Positions 1,113 to 30,559 of a stretch of 32,560 nt of DNA are shown here, one piece after another (within the stretch, counting starts at the first letter, position 1; each line of letters starts with the position of its first letter). The notes below the pieces were generated by a model. That model was not told where the DNA came from. It was given only the letters and a program-made list of their open reading frames with translations, and made no database searches. Source of the stretch: Octopus bimaculoides (lineage: Eukaryota); NCBI RefSeq assembly GCF_001194135.2, contig NC_068988.1, positions 1,077,857-1,110,416 on the forward strand. The letters are read 5' to 3'. Position numbers and translations under genes: made by a program.

Positions 1113-1585
1113 CGCAAATTTGAGAGGTTAATCGCTAACATTGACCCACCCGCACCACTACATGACTATAACGTAGTCAGAAGCATAAGTGGCGGGGTTG
1201 TGTGTGTGTGTNNNNNNNNNNNNNNNNNNNNNNGGGGGGGGGGGTTACAGCAGAAGGTTTTCTGAGAACTCCCCACCGCTTCATGCAAATGTTTCGGCTC
1301 ATAACTCCTTATACTTCAGGCCAAAACCAGATCATGACTCCTGGATACCTCTCTGTTGTCACATTTTGTGCTACTGTCTTTGCAACTCTCCTGAGTAGTT
1401 ACGGTGCCCCAGAGCCAAGTTGCCCTGAGTGATGTAGAATTCAGTCAAAGACGTCAGTTAATTGGCGTCTTTATTTCATGAAATCAGCAAGGATGAAAAG
1501 CAAAGCTGACCTCGGCACGATTTTGCCAGCTCATCATCAAGAAATTTTGTGAAACAGAAAATAGTAAAAAAAATCGGTTTTATAC

Positions 1586-1628
1586 CTCACAGCAAGAAGG
1601 CACCATCCCTAAAGCCAGCCCGGACGTC
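1586..1628 (-). CDS. Peptide gene A, exon 3 (43-nt micro-exon)
   Basis: Acceptor ttttttttctttccacag and donor GAG|GTATAA. In phase 2 it reads (L)TSGLALGMVPSCCE. Length, phase, acceptor and PxCC motif match 24879-24921. Confidence 0.82.
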
Positions 1629-2578: not shown

Positions 2579-2778
2579 AAACAAAACACATCGAAATCGA
2601 TTATTGTGTAGGGTGAACATTGACAGTTATACCATGCAATAGAACATGTTTTATCTATAGCGCATGCGTCGGCTTTCAGAGTGCACTTTGTAGATGGTAC
2701 TGTCGTCAGGTCGACGGGATTTATCAAGAACAACAACACCGACAACACAATAAACAACATGGATTCTCTTTTGTACAT
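2579..2778 (-). CDS. Peptide gene A, coding part of exon 2 (exon 2792-2579): signal-peptide-like segment plus six Cys
   Basis: Acceptor ttcttctttag at 2793, 14-nt UTR, then ATG 2778. Reads MYKRESMLFIVLSVLLFLINPVDLTTVPSTKCTLKADACAIDKTCSIAWYNCQCSPYTIIDFDVFC, then TT|GTAAGT (phase 2). Clear paralogue at 30086-30296. Confidence 0.88.
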
Positions 2779-2894
2779 TTTCAGTTTCTGTTCTAAAGAA
2801 GAAATGAAACAATATCAATGAATTAAACAAACAAATGAAACATTATAAATACGTCTACATTTAACAGAAATTTGGCTTAAAATTTTGGCACAAG

Positions 2895-3030
2895 AAAGTT
2901 CATGTGAAGGGGTAAGTCGATTACATCGACCCCAGTGCTCAACGACTACTTGTTTTACCGACTCGGAAAGGATGAGAGGTAAAGTCGACTTCGGCGGAAT
3001 TTGAACTCAGAACATAAAGACGGACAAACT
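2895..3030 (-). mobile_element. SINE family B fragment
   Basis: Contains gttctgagttcaaattccgccgaagtcgacttt...catcctttc on the minus strand, as at 16935-17145. A smaller piece lies at 1478-1525. Confidence 0.8.
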
Positions 3031-3113: not shown

Positions 3114-4050
3114 GCACACATATATATACATACATATATATGTACACACATACACACATATACGTATATATGTATGTATATGTATATATATATATANNNN
3201 NNNNNNNNNNNNNNNNNNNNNNNNNNNNNNNNNNNNNNNNNNNNNNNNNNNNNNNNNNNNNNNNNNNNNNNNNNNNNNNNNNNNNNNNNNNNNNNNNNNN
3301 NNNNNNNNNNNNNNNNNNNNNNNNNNNNNNNNNNNNNNNNNNNNNNNNNNNNNNNNNNNNNNNNNNNNNNNNNNNNNNNNNNNNNNNNNNNNNNNNNNNN
3401 NNNNNNNNNNNNNNNNNNNNNNNNNNNNNNNNNNNNNNNNNNNNNNNNNNNNNNNNNNNNNNNNNNNNNNNNNNNNNNNNNNNNNNNNNNNNNNNNNNNN
3501 NNNNNNNNNNNNNNNNNNNNNNNNNNNNNNNNNNNNNNNNNNNNNNNNNNNNNNNNNNNNNNNNNNNNNNNNNNNNNNNNNNNNNNNNNNNNNNNNNNNN
3601 NNNNNNNNNNNNNNNNNNNNNNNNNNNNNNNNNNNNNNNNNNNNNNNNNNNNNNNNNNNNNNNNNNNNNNNNNNNNNNNNNNNNNNNNNNNNNNNNNNNN
3701 NNNNNNNNNNNNNNNNNNNNNNNNNNNNNNNNNNNNNNNNNNNNNNNNNNNNNNNNNNNNNNNNNNNNNNNNNNNNNNNNNNNNNNNNNNNNNNNNNNNN
3801 NNNNNNNNNNNNNNNNNNNNNNNNNNNNNNNNNNNNNNNNNNNNNNNNNNNNNNNNNNNNNNNNNNNNNNNNNNNNNNNNNNNNNNNNNNNNNNNNNNNN
3901 NNNNNNNNNNNNNNNNNNNNNNNNNNNNNNNNNNNNNNNNNNNNNNNNNNNNNNNNNNNNNNNNNNNNNNNNNNNNNNNNNNNNNNNNNNNNNNNNNNNN
4001 NNNNNNNNNNNNNNNNNNNNNNNNNNNNNNNNNNNNNNNNNNNNNNNNNN

Positions 4051-4189
4051 GAAGGAAGGAAGGAAGGAAGGAAGGAAGGAAGGAAGGTAGGAAGGAAGGA
4101 AAGTAAAAACAAAAACGAGAAAGAAAACAAAGGAAAGTAAAGAAAGAAAGAAAGAAAAAAGAAAGAGTAAAAGGAAAAAAGAAAGAAAA

Positions 4190-5783: not shown

Positions 5784-5885
5784 GACGAACAGCACAATTC
5801 TCAGAGGTTGACTGCAATATTGGCTGCAGCTGGGAAAAATCGGAAAATCTCACAGCGGACTTTGAAAAGGTTTTTCGCTGTGACT
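5784..5885 (-). other. Non-coding exon 1 (5' UTR) of peptide gene A
   Basis: Starts at the Inr, has no ATG, and ends at CGTC|GTAAGT (donor 5783-5778). It would splice to the acceptor at 2793, giving an intron of about 3.0 kb. Confidence 0.55.
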
Positions 5886-6019: not shown

Positions 6020-6056
<37 letters not shown>

Positions 6057-6585
6057 NNNNNNNNNNNNNNNNNNNNNNNNNNNNNNNNNNNNNNNNNNNN
6101 NNNNNNNNNNNNNNNNNNNNNNNNNNNNNNNNNNNNNNNNNNNNNNNNNNNNNNNNNNNNNNNNNNNNNNNNNNNNNNNNNNNNNNNNNNNNNNNNNNNN
6201 NNNNNNNNNNNNNNNNNNNNNNNNNNNNNNNNNNNNNNNNNNNNNNNNNNNNNNNNNNNNNNNNNNNNNNNNNNNNNNNNNNNNNNNNNNNNNNNNNNNN
6301 NNNNNNNNNNNNNNNNNNNNNNNNNNNNNNNNNNNNNNNNNNNNNNNNNNNNNNNNNNNNNNNNNNNNNNNNNNNNNNNNNNNNNNNNNNNNNNNNNNNN
6401 NNNNNNNNNNNNNNNNNNNNNNNNNNNNNNNNNNNNNNNNNNNNNNNNNNNNNNNNNNNNNNNNNNNNNNNNNNNNNNNNNNNNNNNNNNNNNNNNNNNN
6501 NNNNNNNNNNNNNNNNNNNNNNNNNNNNNNNNNNNNNNNNNNNNNNNNNNNNNNNNNNNNNNNNNNNNNNNNNNNNNNNNNNNNN

Positions 6586-6616
<31 letters not shown>

Positions 6617-6619
<3 letters not shown>

Positions 6620-6784
6620 ACATTGTTTACATTATTTACATTTGACGGATATTTGTCTTCATCTTGTTTGTTAACACATCGTTTCGGCTGATATACCTTC
6701 CAGCTTTCATTGGGTGTCTTGGGGGAAATTTCGAACCTGGATTCTCATTCCTAGGGTATTTTTCGATGCTGTTATGATTATTAT

Positions 6785-10066: not shown

Positions 10067-10245
10067 TGGCGAGCTGGCAGAAACGTTAGCACGCCGAACA
10101 GAATGCTTAACGGTATTTCGTCTGTCTTTATGTTCTGAGTTCAAATTCTATCGAGGTCAGCTTTACTTTACTAAATAATTACCAGTTAATCATTAAGGTC
10201 GATTTAATTAACTTAACCCGTTCCTAAGTTGATAGCCTTGTACCA
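10067..10245 (+). mobile_element. SINE family B
   Basis: ggcgagctggcagaaacgttagcacgccg...gttctgagttcaaattc head and degenerate body. Confidence 0.8.
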
Positions 10246-11890: not shown

Positions 11891-12527
11891 TTTAATTATA
11901 TATTTAGTTACATGTGTGTGTATTTATATCTAAGAAGGGATCGGGGGGAAATCTAATGCCAATAGAAATCTGGTTGTCATATTTACAGTAAACAGGAATA
12001 GGTACATAGTCTACGAGTGATTCTGTTTAACTTTGATTTGTCAAACATGCTTCGTGGCTCTACGAACTTTCTCACGCGATTGGACTTGGAGAATGCAACG
12101 CCAAGGACAGAAGAATAATATAGATGAGAGAGGGGAGGACGGGAGTGAGGCAGTGAGAGAGAGAGAGAGAGAGAGAGAGTGAAAGGAGAGAAGGAGGAAA
12201 GAAAGAAAAAGAAAGAAAGATAGGGAGAAAGAAAGAAAGAAAGAATGAAAAGGAAAGTAAGAAGGGAAAGAAGAAAAAATGAGAAATAAGAAAGAAGGGA
12301 AGAAAGAAAGAAAGAAAGAAAGAAAGGAAGGTAGGGAGGAAAGAAAAGAAAGCGATTATTTTGTCACCTGTTAGTGAATTCTAGATGATTGGTTTTCTAA
12401 TTCAGGAATATCTTAGACATACACACATACACACATACATACATACATACATACATACTTACATACATACATGCATGCATACATGCATACATTCATACAT
12501 ATACACATACACATGCATGCATACATA

Positions 12528-13710
12528 CAAGACAGGTTGCCCCTGGGAGCTCCTCTATGCTGATGACCTTGCCCTAATTGCGGAGTCACTATCAGAACTA
12601 GAGGAGAAGTTTCAGGTGTGGAAGCAAGGTCTAGAATTGAAGGGCCTTAGAGTCAACCTAGCTAAAACCAAAATCCTAATAAGTAGGAAGGTAGATAAAA
12701 CACAAACCCCTTCAGGTAGATGGCCCTGCTCAGTATGTAGAAAAGGAGTAGGTAGTAACTCTATAAGATGTACNNNNNNNNNNNNNNNNNNNNNNNNNNN
12801 NNNNNNNNNNNNNNNNNNNNNNNNNNNNNNNNNNNNNNNNNNNNNNNNNNNNNNNNNNNNNNNNNNNNNNNNNNNNNNNNNNNNNNNNNNNNNNNNNNNN
12901 NNNNNNNNNNNNNNNNNNNNNNNNNNNNNNNNNNNNNNNNNNNNNNNNNNNNNNNNNNNNNNNNNNNNNNNNNNNNNNNNNNNNNNNNNNNNNNNNNNNN
13001 NNNNNNNNNNNNNNNNNNNNNNNNNNNNNNNNNNNNNNNNNNNNNNNNNNNNNNNNNNNNNNNNNNNNNNNNNNNNNNNNNNNNNNNNNNNNNNNNNNNN
13101 NNNNNNNNNNNNNNNNNNNNNNNNNNNNNNNNNNNNNNNNNNNNNNNNNNNNNNNNNNNNNNNNNNNNNNNNNNNNNNNNNNNNNNNNNNNNNNNNNNNN
13201 NNNNNNNNNNNNNNNNNNNNNNNNNNNNNNNNNNNNNNNNNNNNNNNNNNNNNNNNNNNNNNNNNNNNNNNNNNNNNNNNNNNNNNNNNNNNNNNNNNNN
13301 NNNNNNNNNNNNNNNNNNNNNNNNNNNNNNNNNNNNNNNNNNNNNNNNNNNNNNNNNNNNNNNNNNNNNNNNNNNNNNNNNNNNNNNNNNNNNNNNNNNN
13401 NNNNNNNNNNNNNNNNNNNNNNNNNNNNNNNNNNNNNNNNNNNNNNNNNNNNNNNNNNNNNNNNNNNNNNNNNNNNNNNNNNNNNNNNNNNNNNNNNNNN
13501 NNNNNNNNNNGTTTTCGTGCGGGTGACACGTAAAAGCACCCACTACACTCTCTGAGTGGTTGGCGTTAGGAAGGGCATCCAGCTGTAGAAACTCTGCCAA
13601 ATCAGACTGGAGCCTGGTGTTGCCATCCGGTTTCACCAGTCCTCAGTCAAATCGTCCAACCCATGCTAGCATGGAAAGCGGACGTTAAACGATGATGATG
13701 ATGATGATGA
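12528..13710 (+). mobile_element. 5'-truncated RTE-clade LINE, with a gap in the middle
   Basis: PWELLYADDLALIAES...GLRVNLAKTKIL...GRWPCSVCRKGVGSNSIRC is an RT domain with YADD. The 3' UTR after the gap ends in a (GAT)n tail. Confidence 0.9.
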
Positions 13711-16510: not shown

Positions 16511-16700
16511 AGGCGGTTTCCCTTGCAGAATCGTTAACACGTCGGACGAAATGCTTAACGATATTTCTTCCAGGTTTCTACGTTCTGAGTTCAAATTTCA
16601 ACGAGGTCAGGCTTGCTTTTCGTCCGTTCGGGATCGATGAAATAAAGTACTGTGGTTGAATTAATCGACTTACCTCATAGTCTCGAAATTACTCGACTTG
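16511..16700 (+). mobile_element. SINE family B, degenerate
   Basis: gcagaatcgttaacacgtcggacgaaatgcttaac...gttctgagttcaaatt...gatgaaataaagtac. Confidence 0.75.
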
Positions 16701-16934: not shown

Positions 16935-17145
16935 TTCTACTCAAGGCACAAGGCCCGAAATTTGTGGGTAGGGAACCAGTCGATTAGATCGGCTCCAGTA
17001 CATAACTGGTACTTATTTAATCGACCCCGAAAGGATGAAAGGCAAAGTCGACCTCGGCGGAATTTGAACTCATAACGTAGCGGCAGACGAAATACCGCTA
17101 AGCATTTCGCCCGGCGTGTTAACCCTTCTGCCAACTCGCCGCCGA
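16935..17145 (-). mobile_element. SINE family B, near full length
   Basis: ggcggcgagttggcag...gagttcaaattccgccgaggtcgactttgcctttcatcctttcggggtcgat...ccttgtgcc. A head fragment also lies at about 31603-31650. Confidence 0.85.
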
Positions 17146-23820: not shown

Positions 23821-24556
23821 TTTGTACCAAATGATTTTGGAAAATGAATGGGTTATTTCCCTTGGCTGTTAAAATAAAATATATTAGATATACATATATA
23901 TAAGGATCCCTTCCAGAGGCCCTATTATCGATTTTTTTAACAATCTGAGTATGCCATGAGGTTTCCAAACATGAGTTCTACTCACGTGTCAAGTTTCATC
24001 AAAATCGATAAAACGATGTTGGAGGAGTTGGCTAACAACTCCACAAACACACCCATAAACAGAATTTCCCACATATGTAGNNNNNNNNNNNNNNNNNNNN
24101 NNNNNNNNNNNNNNNNNNNNNNNNNNNNNNNNNNNNNNNNNNNNNNNNNNNNNNNNNNNNNNNNNNNNNNNNNNNNNNNNNNNNNNNNNNNNNNNNNNNN
24201 NNNNNNNNNNNNNNNNNNNNNNNNNNNNNNNNNNNNNNNNNNNNNNNNNNNNNNNNNNNNNNNNNNNNNNNNNNNNNNNNNNNNNNNNNNNNNNNNNNNN
24301 NNNNNNNNNNNNNNNNNNNNNNNNNNNNNNNNNNNNNNNNNNNNNNNNNNNNNNNNNNNNNNNNNNNNNNNNNNNNNNNNNNNNNNNNNNNNNNNNNNNN
24401 NNNNNNNNNNNNNNNNNNNNNNNNNNNNNNNNNNNNNNNNNNNNNNNNNNNNNNNNNNNNNNNNNNNNNNNNNNNNNNNNNNNNNNNNNNNNNNNNNNNN
24501 NNNNNNNNNNNNNNNNNNNNNNNNNNNNNNNNNNNNNNNNNNNNNNNNNNNNNNNN

Positions 24557-24658
<102 letters not shown>

Positions 24659-24878: not shown

Positions 24879-24921
24879 CGCACAACAAAGAGGTGTACTC
24901 TTCAAAACTGCTGAAGCTATC
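24879..24921 (-). CDS. Peptide gene B, exon 3 (43-nt micro-exon)
   Basis: Acceptor atttttctttccacag and donor GCG|GTAAGA. In phase 2 it reads (V)IASAVLKSTPLCCA, homologous to 1586-1628. Confidence 0.85.
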
Positions 24922-27399: not shown

Positions 27400-28217
27400 G
27401 GTACTTAAAAAGTATCATATAACCTTTCCATTGGTTCTTTCATTCTTTTGCGTTCGCTCTCAACGAATCTTTTTTTTTTTAGTTGGTTCATGTGTCTCTT
27501 GAATACCCTTTTTCTTCCTTTTACCAAGTATGGCATTTTTCCTATGCGTTTGGTAATCACGCCATCTTCCCAACTGTGTTTTACGTTCTTATATGCCCTA
27601 ACAAATACATTTTCACCAATTTTGAAATTTCGGATCAAAATGCGTTAACGATAAATTCCATGCTAAACTGTTTTATAATTTATCAAATGCCGTCTGGCAC
27701 ATATCAGTCCAGCACCATTTTGCATCTTTCTGTAACAGATCATTGAGTGAGGCTCTTACATTGTGTATACCAGACATATAAATTTGATAATAATTTACTA
27801 ATCTCAAAAAGGTATGTAGCATAGTCGCATTATTCGTGGTGGGCATATATTTTTTATCTCAGTTGTTCTGGATGGATCCGGTTTCCGTTCATTTTTATCT
27901 ATCATCTGGCCCAAGTACTTAGTTTTTTTTGCGGGGGGGGGGGGTTCAGAAAGAACTCGCATTTTCTTCATTATCTTGAAGCCGTATTCTCTTATCTTTT
28001 CGAATACCCTTTTTACGTGTTCTACATGTTGTTCGTGCAATTCGCTTTTTATTAGGATATCGTCTAAATAGGCGATAGCAAAATCACAATCACCCAGCAT
28101 TGTATACATTACTTGCTGAATTATGGAAGGAGCCACTTTTACATCGAAGGGAAACCGTTTGAATTTAAATAAGCCACGGTGTGTATGATTAACTAGCTGG
28201 GCCCGTGAAAACTTCAC
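27400..28217 (-). mobile_element. Gypsy LTR-retrotransposon pol remnant (RT plus integrase C-terminal piece)
   Basis: THRGLFKFKRFPF...APSIIQQVM...AYLDDILI (RT YLDD), then SWEDGVITKRIG...Y.VK...KRHMNQLK, typical of the post-integrase region. Internally deleted. Confidence 0.9.
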
Positions 28218-28457: not shown

Positions 28458-29659
28458 TGTAAGGAACGACCGTGTGTACTCAAAAAAAAGGGAGAAATGG
28501 TGACGAATGGAAAAACAGAGGACTCCTTTTATTTAAACGTGTCACACGGTCGAACACAAAATATATATATCAAAGATGATATACATGATATGTTATACTA
28601 CGATAACATAGATGACCAGTAATGAAAGACCACAACCGTATAAGATGAATAACAAAAATATTTATTATGGCGTTAAAGATGTATGTCTGTGTGAGAGTGT
28701 GAATGCGACATATAAGAACATAATCAAAGACAGGCCGTCGTACAAAGAAAAGTGTGTATGTGAGTGATACATGTGTGTGAGTTATTACAGCAGATGGAAA
28801 GAGAGTCAATAACACGTGAGCAATTATACCAGTTATTTAGTACANNNNNNNNNNNNNNNNNNNNNNNNNNNNNNNNNNNNNNNNNNNNNNNNNNNNNNNN
28901 NNNNNNNNNNNNNNNNNNNNNNNNNNNNNNNNNNNNNNNNNNNNNNNNNNNNNNNNNNNNNNNNNNNNNNNNNNNNNNNNNNNNNNNNNNNNNNNNNNNN
29001 NNNNNNNNNNNNNNNNNNNNNNNNNNNNNNNNNNNNNNNNNNNNNNNNNNNNNNNNNNNNNNNNNNNNNNNNNNNNNNNNNNNNNNNNNNNNNNNNNNNN
29101 NNNNNNNNNNNNNNNNNNNNNNNNNNNNNNNNNNNNNNNNNNNNNNNNNNNNNNNNNNNNNNNNNNNNNNNNNNNNNNNNNNNNNNNNNNNNNNNNNNNN
29201 NNNNNNNNNNNNNNNNNNNNNNNNNNNNNNNNNNNNNNNNNNNNNNNNNNNNNNNNNNNNNNNNNNNNNNNNNNNNNNNNNNNNNNNNNNNNNNNNNNNN
29301 NNNNNNNNNNNNNNNNNNNNNNNNNNNNNTGTTGCTGCTGCTGTTGTGTGGTACACGGAACAGATCTCAAAGAGAAACTGGACCGAGACAAATTGTTGGG
29401 TATGAGTTGATCTATTTAAGGTGTTAAGGGGGCTCCAAGACGGTAGCAGAAAAACACTATCACGTGACCTTATTAAGGGCTGTGATTGGTCAGTTTGCGT
29501 TCTGGCGGGAACGGTTCGAAGAAGTTGCCGATTCGAATAATGATCAGTCACGTGATGACATGGTTAATGTTTTCCGCTACGTTCGCGTTTGTTTATATTT
29601 AAATGAGAAGAATGGCGATAGTAGTCTTGTATCTAGTGACGATAGGTAGTTTCACTACA
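28458..29659 (-). mobile_element. Solo LTR (1202 bp including gap) with 4-bp TSD
   Basis: TGTAGTG...CCTTACA termini and TSD ATTC at 28454-28457 and 29660-29663. Homologous to 1-253 and 32300-32560. Confidence 0.85.
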
Positions 29660-29906: not shown

Positions 29907-30085
29907 TACATACATACATACATACTGGGGTCGATTCGCTCGACTAAACCCCTTGAATGCGGTGCCCCAGCATGACCGCAGCGGAGTAACTGAAGTAATT
30001 AAGATATATAAAAAAGTACGAGAATAAATATATTTGAACAAACTGTTTGAATTCGTATCGCTTTCGATACAATATGTATACGTAC

Positions 30086-30282
30086 ACACAAAATTCGTTT
30101 AAGGACATTGTTTGAGTGGGATTACAGCTGCAGTGATACCATTTCCTGGCGCATTCAGTAACTTTCAAACATTTCGATATTGGTACTGGACATTGAGCGG
30201 ACGGCAACAGTGTGAGTTTCATGGGATTTACCAGGACCAGCGACACCAACAATACAAACAATATGGCTTCTCTCTTATACAT
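30086..30282 (-). CDS. Peptide gene B, coding part of exon 2 (exon 30296-30086): signal-peptide-like segment plus six Cys
   Basis: Acceptor ttcgtttttag at 30297, 14-nt UTR, then ATG 30282. Reads MYKREAILFVLLVSLVLVNPMKLTLLPSAQCPVPISKCLKVTECARKWYHCSCNPTQTMSLNEFC, then GT|GTACGT (phase 2, same position as gene A). Confidence 0.88.
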
Positions 30283-30559
30283 GTTCAGTTTCTGTTCTAA
30301 AAACGAAATGAAACAATATCAACGAATTAAACAGACAAATGAAACATAATCACGTCTACATTTAATTGAAACGTTAAGGTTCACTGTAAATAGCTTCTAA
30401 TTGGTTATTCGACTTGCTAGTTTAGTGGATGTTAGCCATCAATCCATCGCTGGTAGTACACCATCTTTCTTTTCTTCCCTGAGCTCTGCTAATACTTTAC
30501 ATGTACCACGTACTCGCGTTGTTGTTTTTCTTTTGTATTTGTTCTTTTTGGGATTTATT

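Follow-up and report, generated by a model that had tools for sequence, protein, structure and literature searches.

How can the non-coding DNA at the 5' end of two neighboring genes be far more alike than the parts of those genes that encode the mature peptide? The question was raised by a first-pass annotation of a 32,560-nucleotide stretch of Octopus bimaculoides genomic DNA (hereafter the window; eukaryotic sequence with microsatellites and SINE-like repeats). Here we present a comparison of the two genes with each other and with their counterparts in Octopus vulgaris. The account that probably fits best is an old tandem pair of eight-cysteine genes, with diversifying selection on the mature loops and constraint on the signal and splice regions. 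In this account, the duplication would precede the split between O. bimaculoides and O. vulgaris, and the introns and synonymous sites of the paralogues would have become saturated. Purifying selection would hold the terminal 50-70 nt of intron 1, the 14-nt leader and the splice flanks of a 43-nt exon, as well as the first codons and the hydrophobicity of the signal peptide and the eight cysteines with their spacing. In the loops that separate the cysteines, diversifying selection would replace amino acids again and again, so that these loops evolve more rapidly than neutral DNA.

Two tandem paralogues, designated gene A (ATG at 2778) and gene B (ATG at 30282), lie on the minus strand of the window. 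A 67-aa minus-strand ORF at 2575-2778 is identical to residues 1-67 of the 82-residue UniProt entry A0A0L8IEN1_OCTBM, an uncharacterised O. bimaculoides protein that is the product of gene A. In both genes, exon 2 opens with a 14-nt leader and the ATG, and goes on to encode an N-terminus that resembles a signal peptide, and Cys1-Cys6. It starts at a canonical acceptor, a T-rich tract followed by TTTAG/AACAG (the slash marks the splice site), and ends in phase 2 at the donor GTAAGT at 2578 in gene A and GTACGT at 30085 in gene B. Cys7 and Cys8 are encoded on a separate 43-nt exon in both genes, with a GT donor and the acceptor TTTTTCTTTCCACAG in each.

In gene A, with all features on the minus strand, the conserved 3' end of intron 1 occupies 2793-2864 (72 nt, T-rich and ending in TTTAG), followed by the leader upstream of the ATG (2779-2792; AACAGAAACTGAAA), by codons 1-31, the part of the ORF that encodes the predicted signal peptide up to Cys1 (2686-2778; MYKRESMLFIVLSVLLFLINPVDLTTVPSTK), and by the hypervariable Cys1-Cys6 segment (2579-2685). 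Exon 3 lies at 1586-1628 (TSGLALGMVPSCCE; acceptor TTTCTTTCCACAG, donor GTATAA) and matches the C-terminus of A0A0L8IEN1. The range 2579-2843 to which the first-pass annotation was attached thus comprises exon 2 and 51 nt of intron, and Cys7-Cys8 fall outside it. A candidate upstream non-coding exon of 46 nt (CAG...GTAAGT, at about 5785-5830) is homologous to an annotated exon of the O. vulgaris locus (L001 54402-54447), with its splice sites conserved. In gene B, likewise on the minus strand, the conserved end of intron 1 lies at 30297-30365, the leader at 30283-30296 (AACAGAAACTGAAC) and the coding part of exon 2, signal peptide and Cys1-Cys6, at 30086-30282. Its 43-nt exon 3 at 24879-24921 (IASAVLKSTPLCCA), which is followed by the donor GTAAGA, was located by a phase-aware acceptor scan and enters a four-way alignment.

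The 3' ends of the genes are less uniform. For exon 4 of gene A, which in the UniProt model supplies the final D, no AG/GAY-stop candidate was found downstream inside the window; either this exon lies beyond the window or the UniProt model is wrong. The tail after the vicinal CC varies: in the O. vulgaris orthologue of gene A, a TAG follows directly after CC (L001 74406-74408), and in O. bimaculoides gene A (1580-1590, minus strand) the sequence reads CCE and then either V-stop, if unspliced, or D-stop, as in the UniProt model. Assembly gaps amount to 3,963 N in total (at approximately 3198-4070, 6050-6640, 12770-13510, 24080-24600, 28840-29390 and elsewhere). Two of them fall in intron 2 of gene B, so that intron lengths here are unreliable.

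Both peptides share the cysteine frame C-x6-C-x5-C-x6-C-x-C-x11-C-x12-CC, within a precursor of about 80 aa and a mature peptide of about 50 aa. To our knowledge, the pattern C-C-C-C-C-C-CC is not among the frameworks listed in ConoServer. By inspection, the N-terminus has a basic n-region (MYKRE) and a hydrophobic core of 13-15 residues, and is predicted to be a signal peptide; the peptides would accordingly be secreted and their cysteines disulfide-bonded. The four full-length sequences from the two species have eight cysteines and no indels between Cys1 and Cys8. A fifth sequence, an exon-2-only model (P0003), spans Cys1-Cys6 and agrees in its cysteines and loop lengths. Over these five sequences, 11 of 31 positions of the N-terminus are invariant, as are three of the 29 non-Cys positions within Cys1-Cys6.

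Comparison of gene A with gene B upheld the observation that had raised the question. The segments 2779-2843 and 30283-30347, described by eye as matching at 60 of 65 positions, match at exactly that number without gaps, and a gapless alignment from Cys1 to Cys8 keeps all eight cysteines and only six of 41 non-Cys residues (W49, Y50, P56, F65, L73 and P77). The N-terminus is intermediate, as had been noted, with 17 of 31 residues identical. The 39-nt core of the conserved tract occurs at these two places in the window and nowhere else in it (chance matches, 0 in 100 shuffles). A blastn self-comparison returned one homologous block, 2716-2870 against 30223-30371, at 83% over 155 nt, beyond which the paralogues are unalignable; neither this comparison nor a pattern scan found a third copy in the window. 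Two other identities for the tract were considered and set aside: a dispersed repeat (from the pattern scan and self-comparison of the window and from the O. vulgaris locus), and a structured RNA (folding z-scores of 0.3-0.6 for the gene strand, and of 0.4 and -0.9 for its complement). Also, Rfam gave no match for the conserved tract.

The paralogue pair is a poor instrument for the study of selection. Synonymous differences between A and B reach a pS of 0.57-0.68, and the third position differs in five of the eight Cys codons. For non-Cys mature codons, pS is 0.57 and pN 0.60, giving a pN/pS of 1.05 (bootstrap interval 0.76-1.5). Since synonymous and nonsynonymous sites alike are saturated, the A/B comparison says nothing on selection in the mature region, and paralogue dN/dS was rejected as uninformative. 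For the N-terminus, a pN/pS of 0.37 and 93% identity at second codon positions point to purifying selection for a hydrophobic signal peptide.

A more informative comparison was available in O. vulgaris. Both orthologues lie on chromosome OX597821.1 (L001) in the same order and orientation, and the O. vulgaris locus matches the window collinearly over its full length, at 86-90% identity. The presence of both genes in order establishes that the duplication is older than the split between the two species, and the orthologues therefore allow a comparison in which synonymous sites are not saturated. The non-coding background between the species, 1450 differences in 17461 aligned columns or 8.3%, was taken from 17.5 kb of BLAST-alignable DNA and may be an underestimate. 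Introns adjoining the exons differ by 7-12%.

In both comparisons, between orthologues and between paralogues, the flank and signal region are more conserved than the mature region. Over the last 72 nt of intron 1, identity is 100% for the A orthologues, 88% for the B orthologues and 89-90% for the paralogues. For the 14-nt leader, the corresponding values are 100%, 100% and 93% (14/14, 14/14 and 13/14 positions); for the N-terminal codons 90%, 86% and 68-69% (69% for gene A against its paralogue); and for Cys1-Cys6 67%, 79% and 47-51% (48% for gene A against its paralogue). The first 100 nt of intron 2 are 88% and 93% identical between A and B orthologues, respectively, and about 50% identical, that is, unalignable, between paralogues. 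The flank of the A orthologues has no changes in 86 positions (p = 6e-4). The intron tract of the B orthologues has eight changes in 80, near background and mostly in its distal part, so that constraint on the flank is demonstrated for gene A only.

A similar arrangement surrounds the 43-nt exon. The exon itself is 72% identical between A orthologues and 47-58% between paralogues, and its flanks are 91-100% identical between orthologues and 68-94% between paralogues; in the paralogue comparison, the upstream intron is 94% identical over its final 20 nt and the downstream intron 68-70% identical over its initial 25 nt. Beyond these splice flanks, paralogue identity drops to 32-40%.

Could the similarity of the 5' tract be the work of gene conversion, with the divergence of the mature region simply the true age of the pair? 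On this account, conversion instead of constraint would have kept alike some 150 nt comprising the end of intron 1, the leader and the first 21 codons. The tract is indeed short and sharp-edged, with unalignable DNA on either side of the homologous block, and the near-neutral divergence of its B orthologues fits. Its paralogue divergence of about 10% is also close to the interspecies value, as would be expected of an event somewhat before the split. Conversion since the split is, however, contradicted by the tract together with the first 66 coding nucleotides, where ten informative sites group the sequences by orthology and none by species. This disposes of the more recent form of one alternative raised in the first-pass annotation. 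The unchanged flank of the A orthologues is what constraint would give, and the signal peptide is common to a third paralogue. Moreover, exon 3 has diverged between two conserved patches of 20-30 nt, a pattern that conversion cannot yield, as a converted tract cannot skip its middle. Finally, conversion leaves unexplained a mature divergence between orthologues that lies above background. We consider the conversion account improbable as a whole, and an older event, before the species split, a possible contributor to the flank similarity. The other alternative that had been raised, a splicing constraint on the flank, fared better: the main cause of flank conservation appears to be constraint on splice-proximal sequence, leader and signal, as judged from the unchanged flank of gene A and the flanks of exon 3. 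The idea that B had converted the mature region of A was also considered and rejected, as cross-species paralogue identities are 47-51% throughout, without asymmetry.

The mature region behaves in the opposite manner. From Cys1 to Cys8, the coding DNA of the gene A orthologues differs at 46 of 147 positions (31.3%, p = 1e-15) and that of the gene B orthologues at 29 of 147 (19.7%, p = 1e-5), which is 2.4-3.8 times the non-coding background. In a scan of the interspecies alignment by sliding windows of 107 nt (16,357 in all), the gene A mature segment is the most divergent (37/107; mean 9.4, sd 4.5) and the gene B segment ranks fifth; the other top-ranking windows lie in microsatellite-rich or gap-adjacent sequence. 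At nonsynonymous sites, divergence reaches 42% in A and 25% in B against the 8.3% background, three to five times the non-coding rate. The mature region thus changes faster than neutral DNA.

Codon-based estimates between orthologues agree, with omega above 1. For non-Cys mature codons, the NG86 method gives an omega of 2.25 in A (Fisher p = 0.036) and of 1.59 in B. Maximum-likelihood pairwise fits of the GY94 model with a shared omega gave 2.4-2.7 over Cys1-Cys8 (LRT p = 0.02-0.04) and 2.9-3.5 when Cys codons were left out (p = 0.0025-0.009), and were stable over three codon-frequency settings. These estimates come from pairwise models, and the selection data comprise two species and five sequences. 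The significance of an omega above 1 rests on 19 codons with two or three differences (13 of 49 mature codons in A and 6 of 49 in B). For single-difference codons alone, the ratio of nonsynonymous to synonymous changes is 26:5 against an expected 3.8:1, an omega of about 1.4 that is not significant. Multi-nucleotide mutation can inflate omega, and the many multi-change codons hint at either such mutation or repeated hits to the same codons. Furthermore, synonymous divergence in the mature region (2579-2685 and 30086-30192, minus strand) is 0.17-0.23 against a background of 0.083, or 2-2.7 times higher, so a local mutational contribution is possible.

These last figures speak for an account without adaptation, in which the mature segments are relaxed and decaying, or sit in a mutational hotspot that includes multi-nucleotide events, and the cysteines persist under weak residual constraint. 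To the raised synonymous divergence, the multi-change codons of gene A and the modest omega of single-difference codons may be added the paralogue pN/pS of about 1. Nevertheless, neutral decay cannot outrun the neutral rate, and the nonsynonymous sites do so by the margin given above when set against 17.5 kb of non-coding DNA. Reading frames, the eight cysteines, loop lengths and splice sites are intact in all four genes, and in the third paralogue as well. A hotspot, for its part, would have to match two coding segments 1-5 kb apart and spare signal codons and introns within 100 nt of them. We therefore regard an account without adaptation as quite unlikely, and favor diversifying selection on the loops, under which the acceleration would be adaptive, not mutational. 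The proposal in the first-pass annotation that the mature peptide is accelerated and probably positively selected is in this respect borne out, by the orthologues and not by the A/B pair on which it was founded.

The reading of the conserved tract as 5' UTR plus the end of intron 1 found indirect support in the gene annotation of the O. vulgaris locus. The protein CAI9727362.1 could be rebuilt exactly only by joining L001 10001-10043, 28848-29058, 54402-54447 and 70252-70263, and this reconstruction uses the AG/AACAG acceptor of both genes; in addition, the TTTAG/AACAG end of the T-rich tract is kept in four of four gene copies. That the tract is instead a core promoter or transcription start region has in its favor a TATA-like TATTTATAA that lies some 65 nt before the ATG of gene A, but it is the least probable of the alternatives, for this motif is broken in O. 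bimaculoides gene B by a 3-nt deletion and substitutions, the pyrimidine tract with its acceptor is present in every copy, and in the O. vulgaris model exons located 15-19 kb upstream are joined to that acceptor in both genes, one of these exons being conserved in the window (5785-5830).

With the locus most plausibly read as an old pair with diversifying loops and constrained flanks, its likeness to known systems can be considered. In genes for snake-venom phospholipase A2 and three-finger toxins (Nakashima et al., 1993 and 1995) and for abalone sperm lysin (Metz, Robles-Sikisaka and Vacquier, 1998), introns and UTRs are reported to be better conserved than the coding parts, and nonsynonymous substitution to run above that of introns. 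The octopus genes share with these systems nonsynonymous divergence above intron divergence. They differ in that the proteins and folds are unrelated and come from vertebrates or gastropods, and that for the toxins and lysin both function and partners are known.

The closest parallel in genomic pattern is with the conotoxins. According to Wu et al. 2013 (PMC3862624), conotoxin superfamilies have conserved signals and introns, most substitutions and selected sites fall in the mature-peptide exon, and signal, pro-region and mature peptide are on separate exons. The octopus genes likewise encode predicted secreted precursors with conserved signal, intron sequence and cysteine frame around a hypervariable mature peptide, and both are tandem or multigene families in a mollusc. 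In contrast to the layout given there, the octopus signal and Cys1-Cys6 share one exon, so that the switch in rate falls inside an exon; Cys7-Cys8 are on the 43-nt exon, and there is no obvious pro-region. Membership in a conotoxin superfamily was rejected, as a search of 1.84 billion proteins recovered Octopus sequences only, with no homology to conotoxins, and as both the exon layout and the cysteine pattern differ. The comparison with conotoxins and snake toxins drawn in the first-pass annotation is therefore apt for the evolutionary pattern and does not extend to family membership.

Structural evidence was less decisive. AlphaFold2 models of the full precursor and of the mature part were helical and of low confidence (pLDDT 55 and 61, respectively), and Foldseek against the PDB with the low-confidence model returned no match. 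The only PDB sequence match was to the Aplysia attractin (1T50), a water-borne peptide pheromone, at a non-significant E of 0.28. Its score of 11.7 bits compares with 6.05 +/- 2.4 for shuffles with cysteines fixed, and 2.2% of the shuffles reach that score. Attractin is also a small secreted mollusc peptide, shares four consecutive cysteines with the spacing C-x6-C-x5-C-x6-C and is helical, as is the low-confidence octopus model throughout. It differs in having six cysteines and in carrying the motif IEECKTS, which the octopus peptides lack, and its remaining cysteines do not correspond. With the likeness limited to four spacings, the motif missing and E at 0.28, membership in the attractin family is not supported, and we treat the likeness as a lead only. 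EGF-like domains resemble the octopus peptides in their six cysteines, in the C-x-C formed by Cys4 and Cys5 and, broadly, in the lengths of their loops; the octopus peptides differ in their short Cys3-Cys4 loop of six residues, in two extra vicinal cysteines and in a low-confidence model that is helical instead of a beta-hairpin. An EGF-like identity (PF00008 and relatives) is likewise not supported: none of the five members matched an EGF profile, even at E<=10.

Searches for relatives led back to the genus. Word-indexed searches and an exhaustive HMMER profile search over 1.84 billion representative proteins recovered three family members, all from Octopus: the gene A product, the O. vulgaris model containing the B orthologue, and A0A0L8IDK4_OCTBM; no homologue outside Octopus was found in that set. 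A0A0L8IDK4_OCTBM is a third O. bimaculoides paralogue, located outside the window, with the same signal peptide and cysteine frame. It is annotated from exon 2 only, as 67 aa ending in ...FCL with a stop taken from the GTAA of the splice donor, and UniProt names it "EGF-like domain-containing", for which Pfam gives no backing. In Pfam, even at E<=10, none of the five members matched a relevant family. For gene B of O. bimaculoides, the databases searched contain no protein, and the gene appears to be unannotated. CAI9727362.1 (A0AA36B5J9; 103 aa, O. vulgaris OX597821.1, L001 10001-70263) is a chimera in which an upstream exon is followed by B exon 2 and the 46-nt exon; the model ends in the gene A 5' leader ("NRN*", encoded by AACAGAAACTGA), and skips the 43-nt exon of gene B with Cys7-Cys8. 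It stems from either read-through transcription or faulty annotation. Exact look-up of transcripts or contigs for A0A0L8IEN1 and A0A0L8IDK4 found neither on record, metagenome scans with patterns from the conserved flank and leader gave no matches, and literature searches on the accessions and on octopus Cys-rich peptide families found no description of this family. With one paralogue missing, one truncated and the O. vulgaris model chimeric, comparative studies based on annotated proteomes would miss this family. The family is poorly annotated and previously undescribed, and the evolutionary pattern itself is well known.

What might such a peptide do? When small disulfide-rich peptides outpace neutral DNA in their evolution, they nearly always act where an animal meets another organism or a mate: in venom, immunity, or gamete and pheromone recognition. 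If the acceleration is adaptive, the partner of the product would itself be expected to change fast, whether a prey or predator target, a microbe or a receptor in conspecifics. What is known of venoms and chemical communication in cephalopods concerns mainly large proteins, and an apparently octopus-restricted tandem family of eight-cysteine peptides under strong diversification is a concrete candidate for a role in either. More speculatively, and with little expectation that it will prove correct, the products could be species-specific signaling or recognition peptides of the octopus lineage (a pheromone, water-borne or acting on contact, or a gamete or mate ligand, with an attractin-like, disulfide-stapled helical fold), or a new small-peptide component of octopus venom, with loops co-evolving with a receptor. 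Were this true, the switch in rate within one exon would provide a compact model of how selection or targeted mutation hyper-diversifies a peptide and spares sequence 100 nt away. The change from conserved to hypervariable sequence inside one exon and around the 43-nt exon also separates selection on the peptide from mutational effects on whole exons or regions.

The remainder of the window contains several other elements. Fragments of reverse transcriptase (Pfam RVT_1) lie at 27804-28217 on the minus strand (E = 9e-14), within intron 2 of gene B, and at 12385-12770 on the plus strand (E = 2e-6), and represent retroelement remnants. A SINE-like dispersed repeat at 78-81% identity occurs at 2915-3016, 16978-17079, 10068-10164 and 16525-16650; one copy sits about 40 nt upstream of the conserved tract of gene A and is common to O. 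vulgaris. An inverted repeat pair (1-253 against 28458-28715; 259 nt, 91%), presumably a transposable element, has its arms at the edge of the window and in intron 2 of gene B, respectively. Finally, antisense ORFs on the plus strand at 2620-2796 (58 aa) and 30112-30300 (62 aa) have similar C-termini (GIYQEQQHRQHNKQHGFSFVHFQFLF and GIYQDQRHQQYKQYGFSLIHVQFLF), and are most likely a mirror of the conserved tract on the sense strand.
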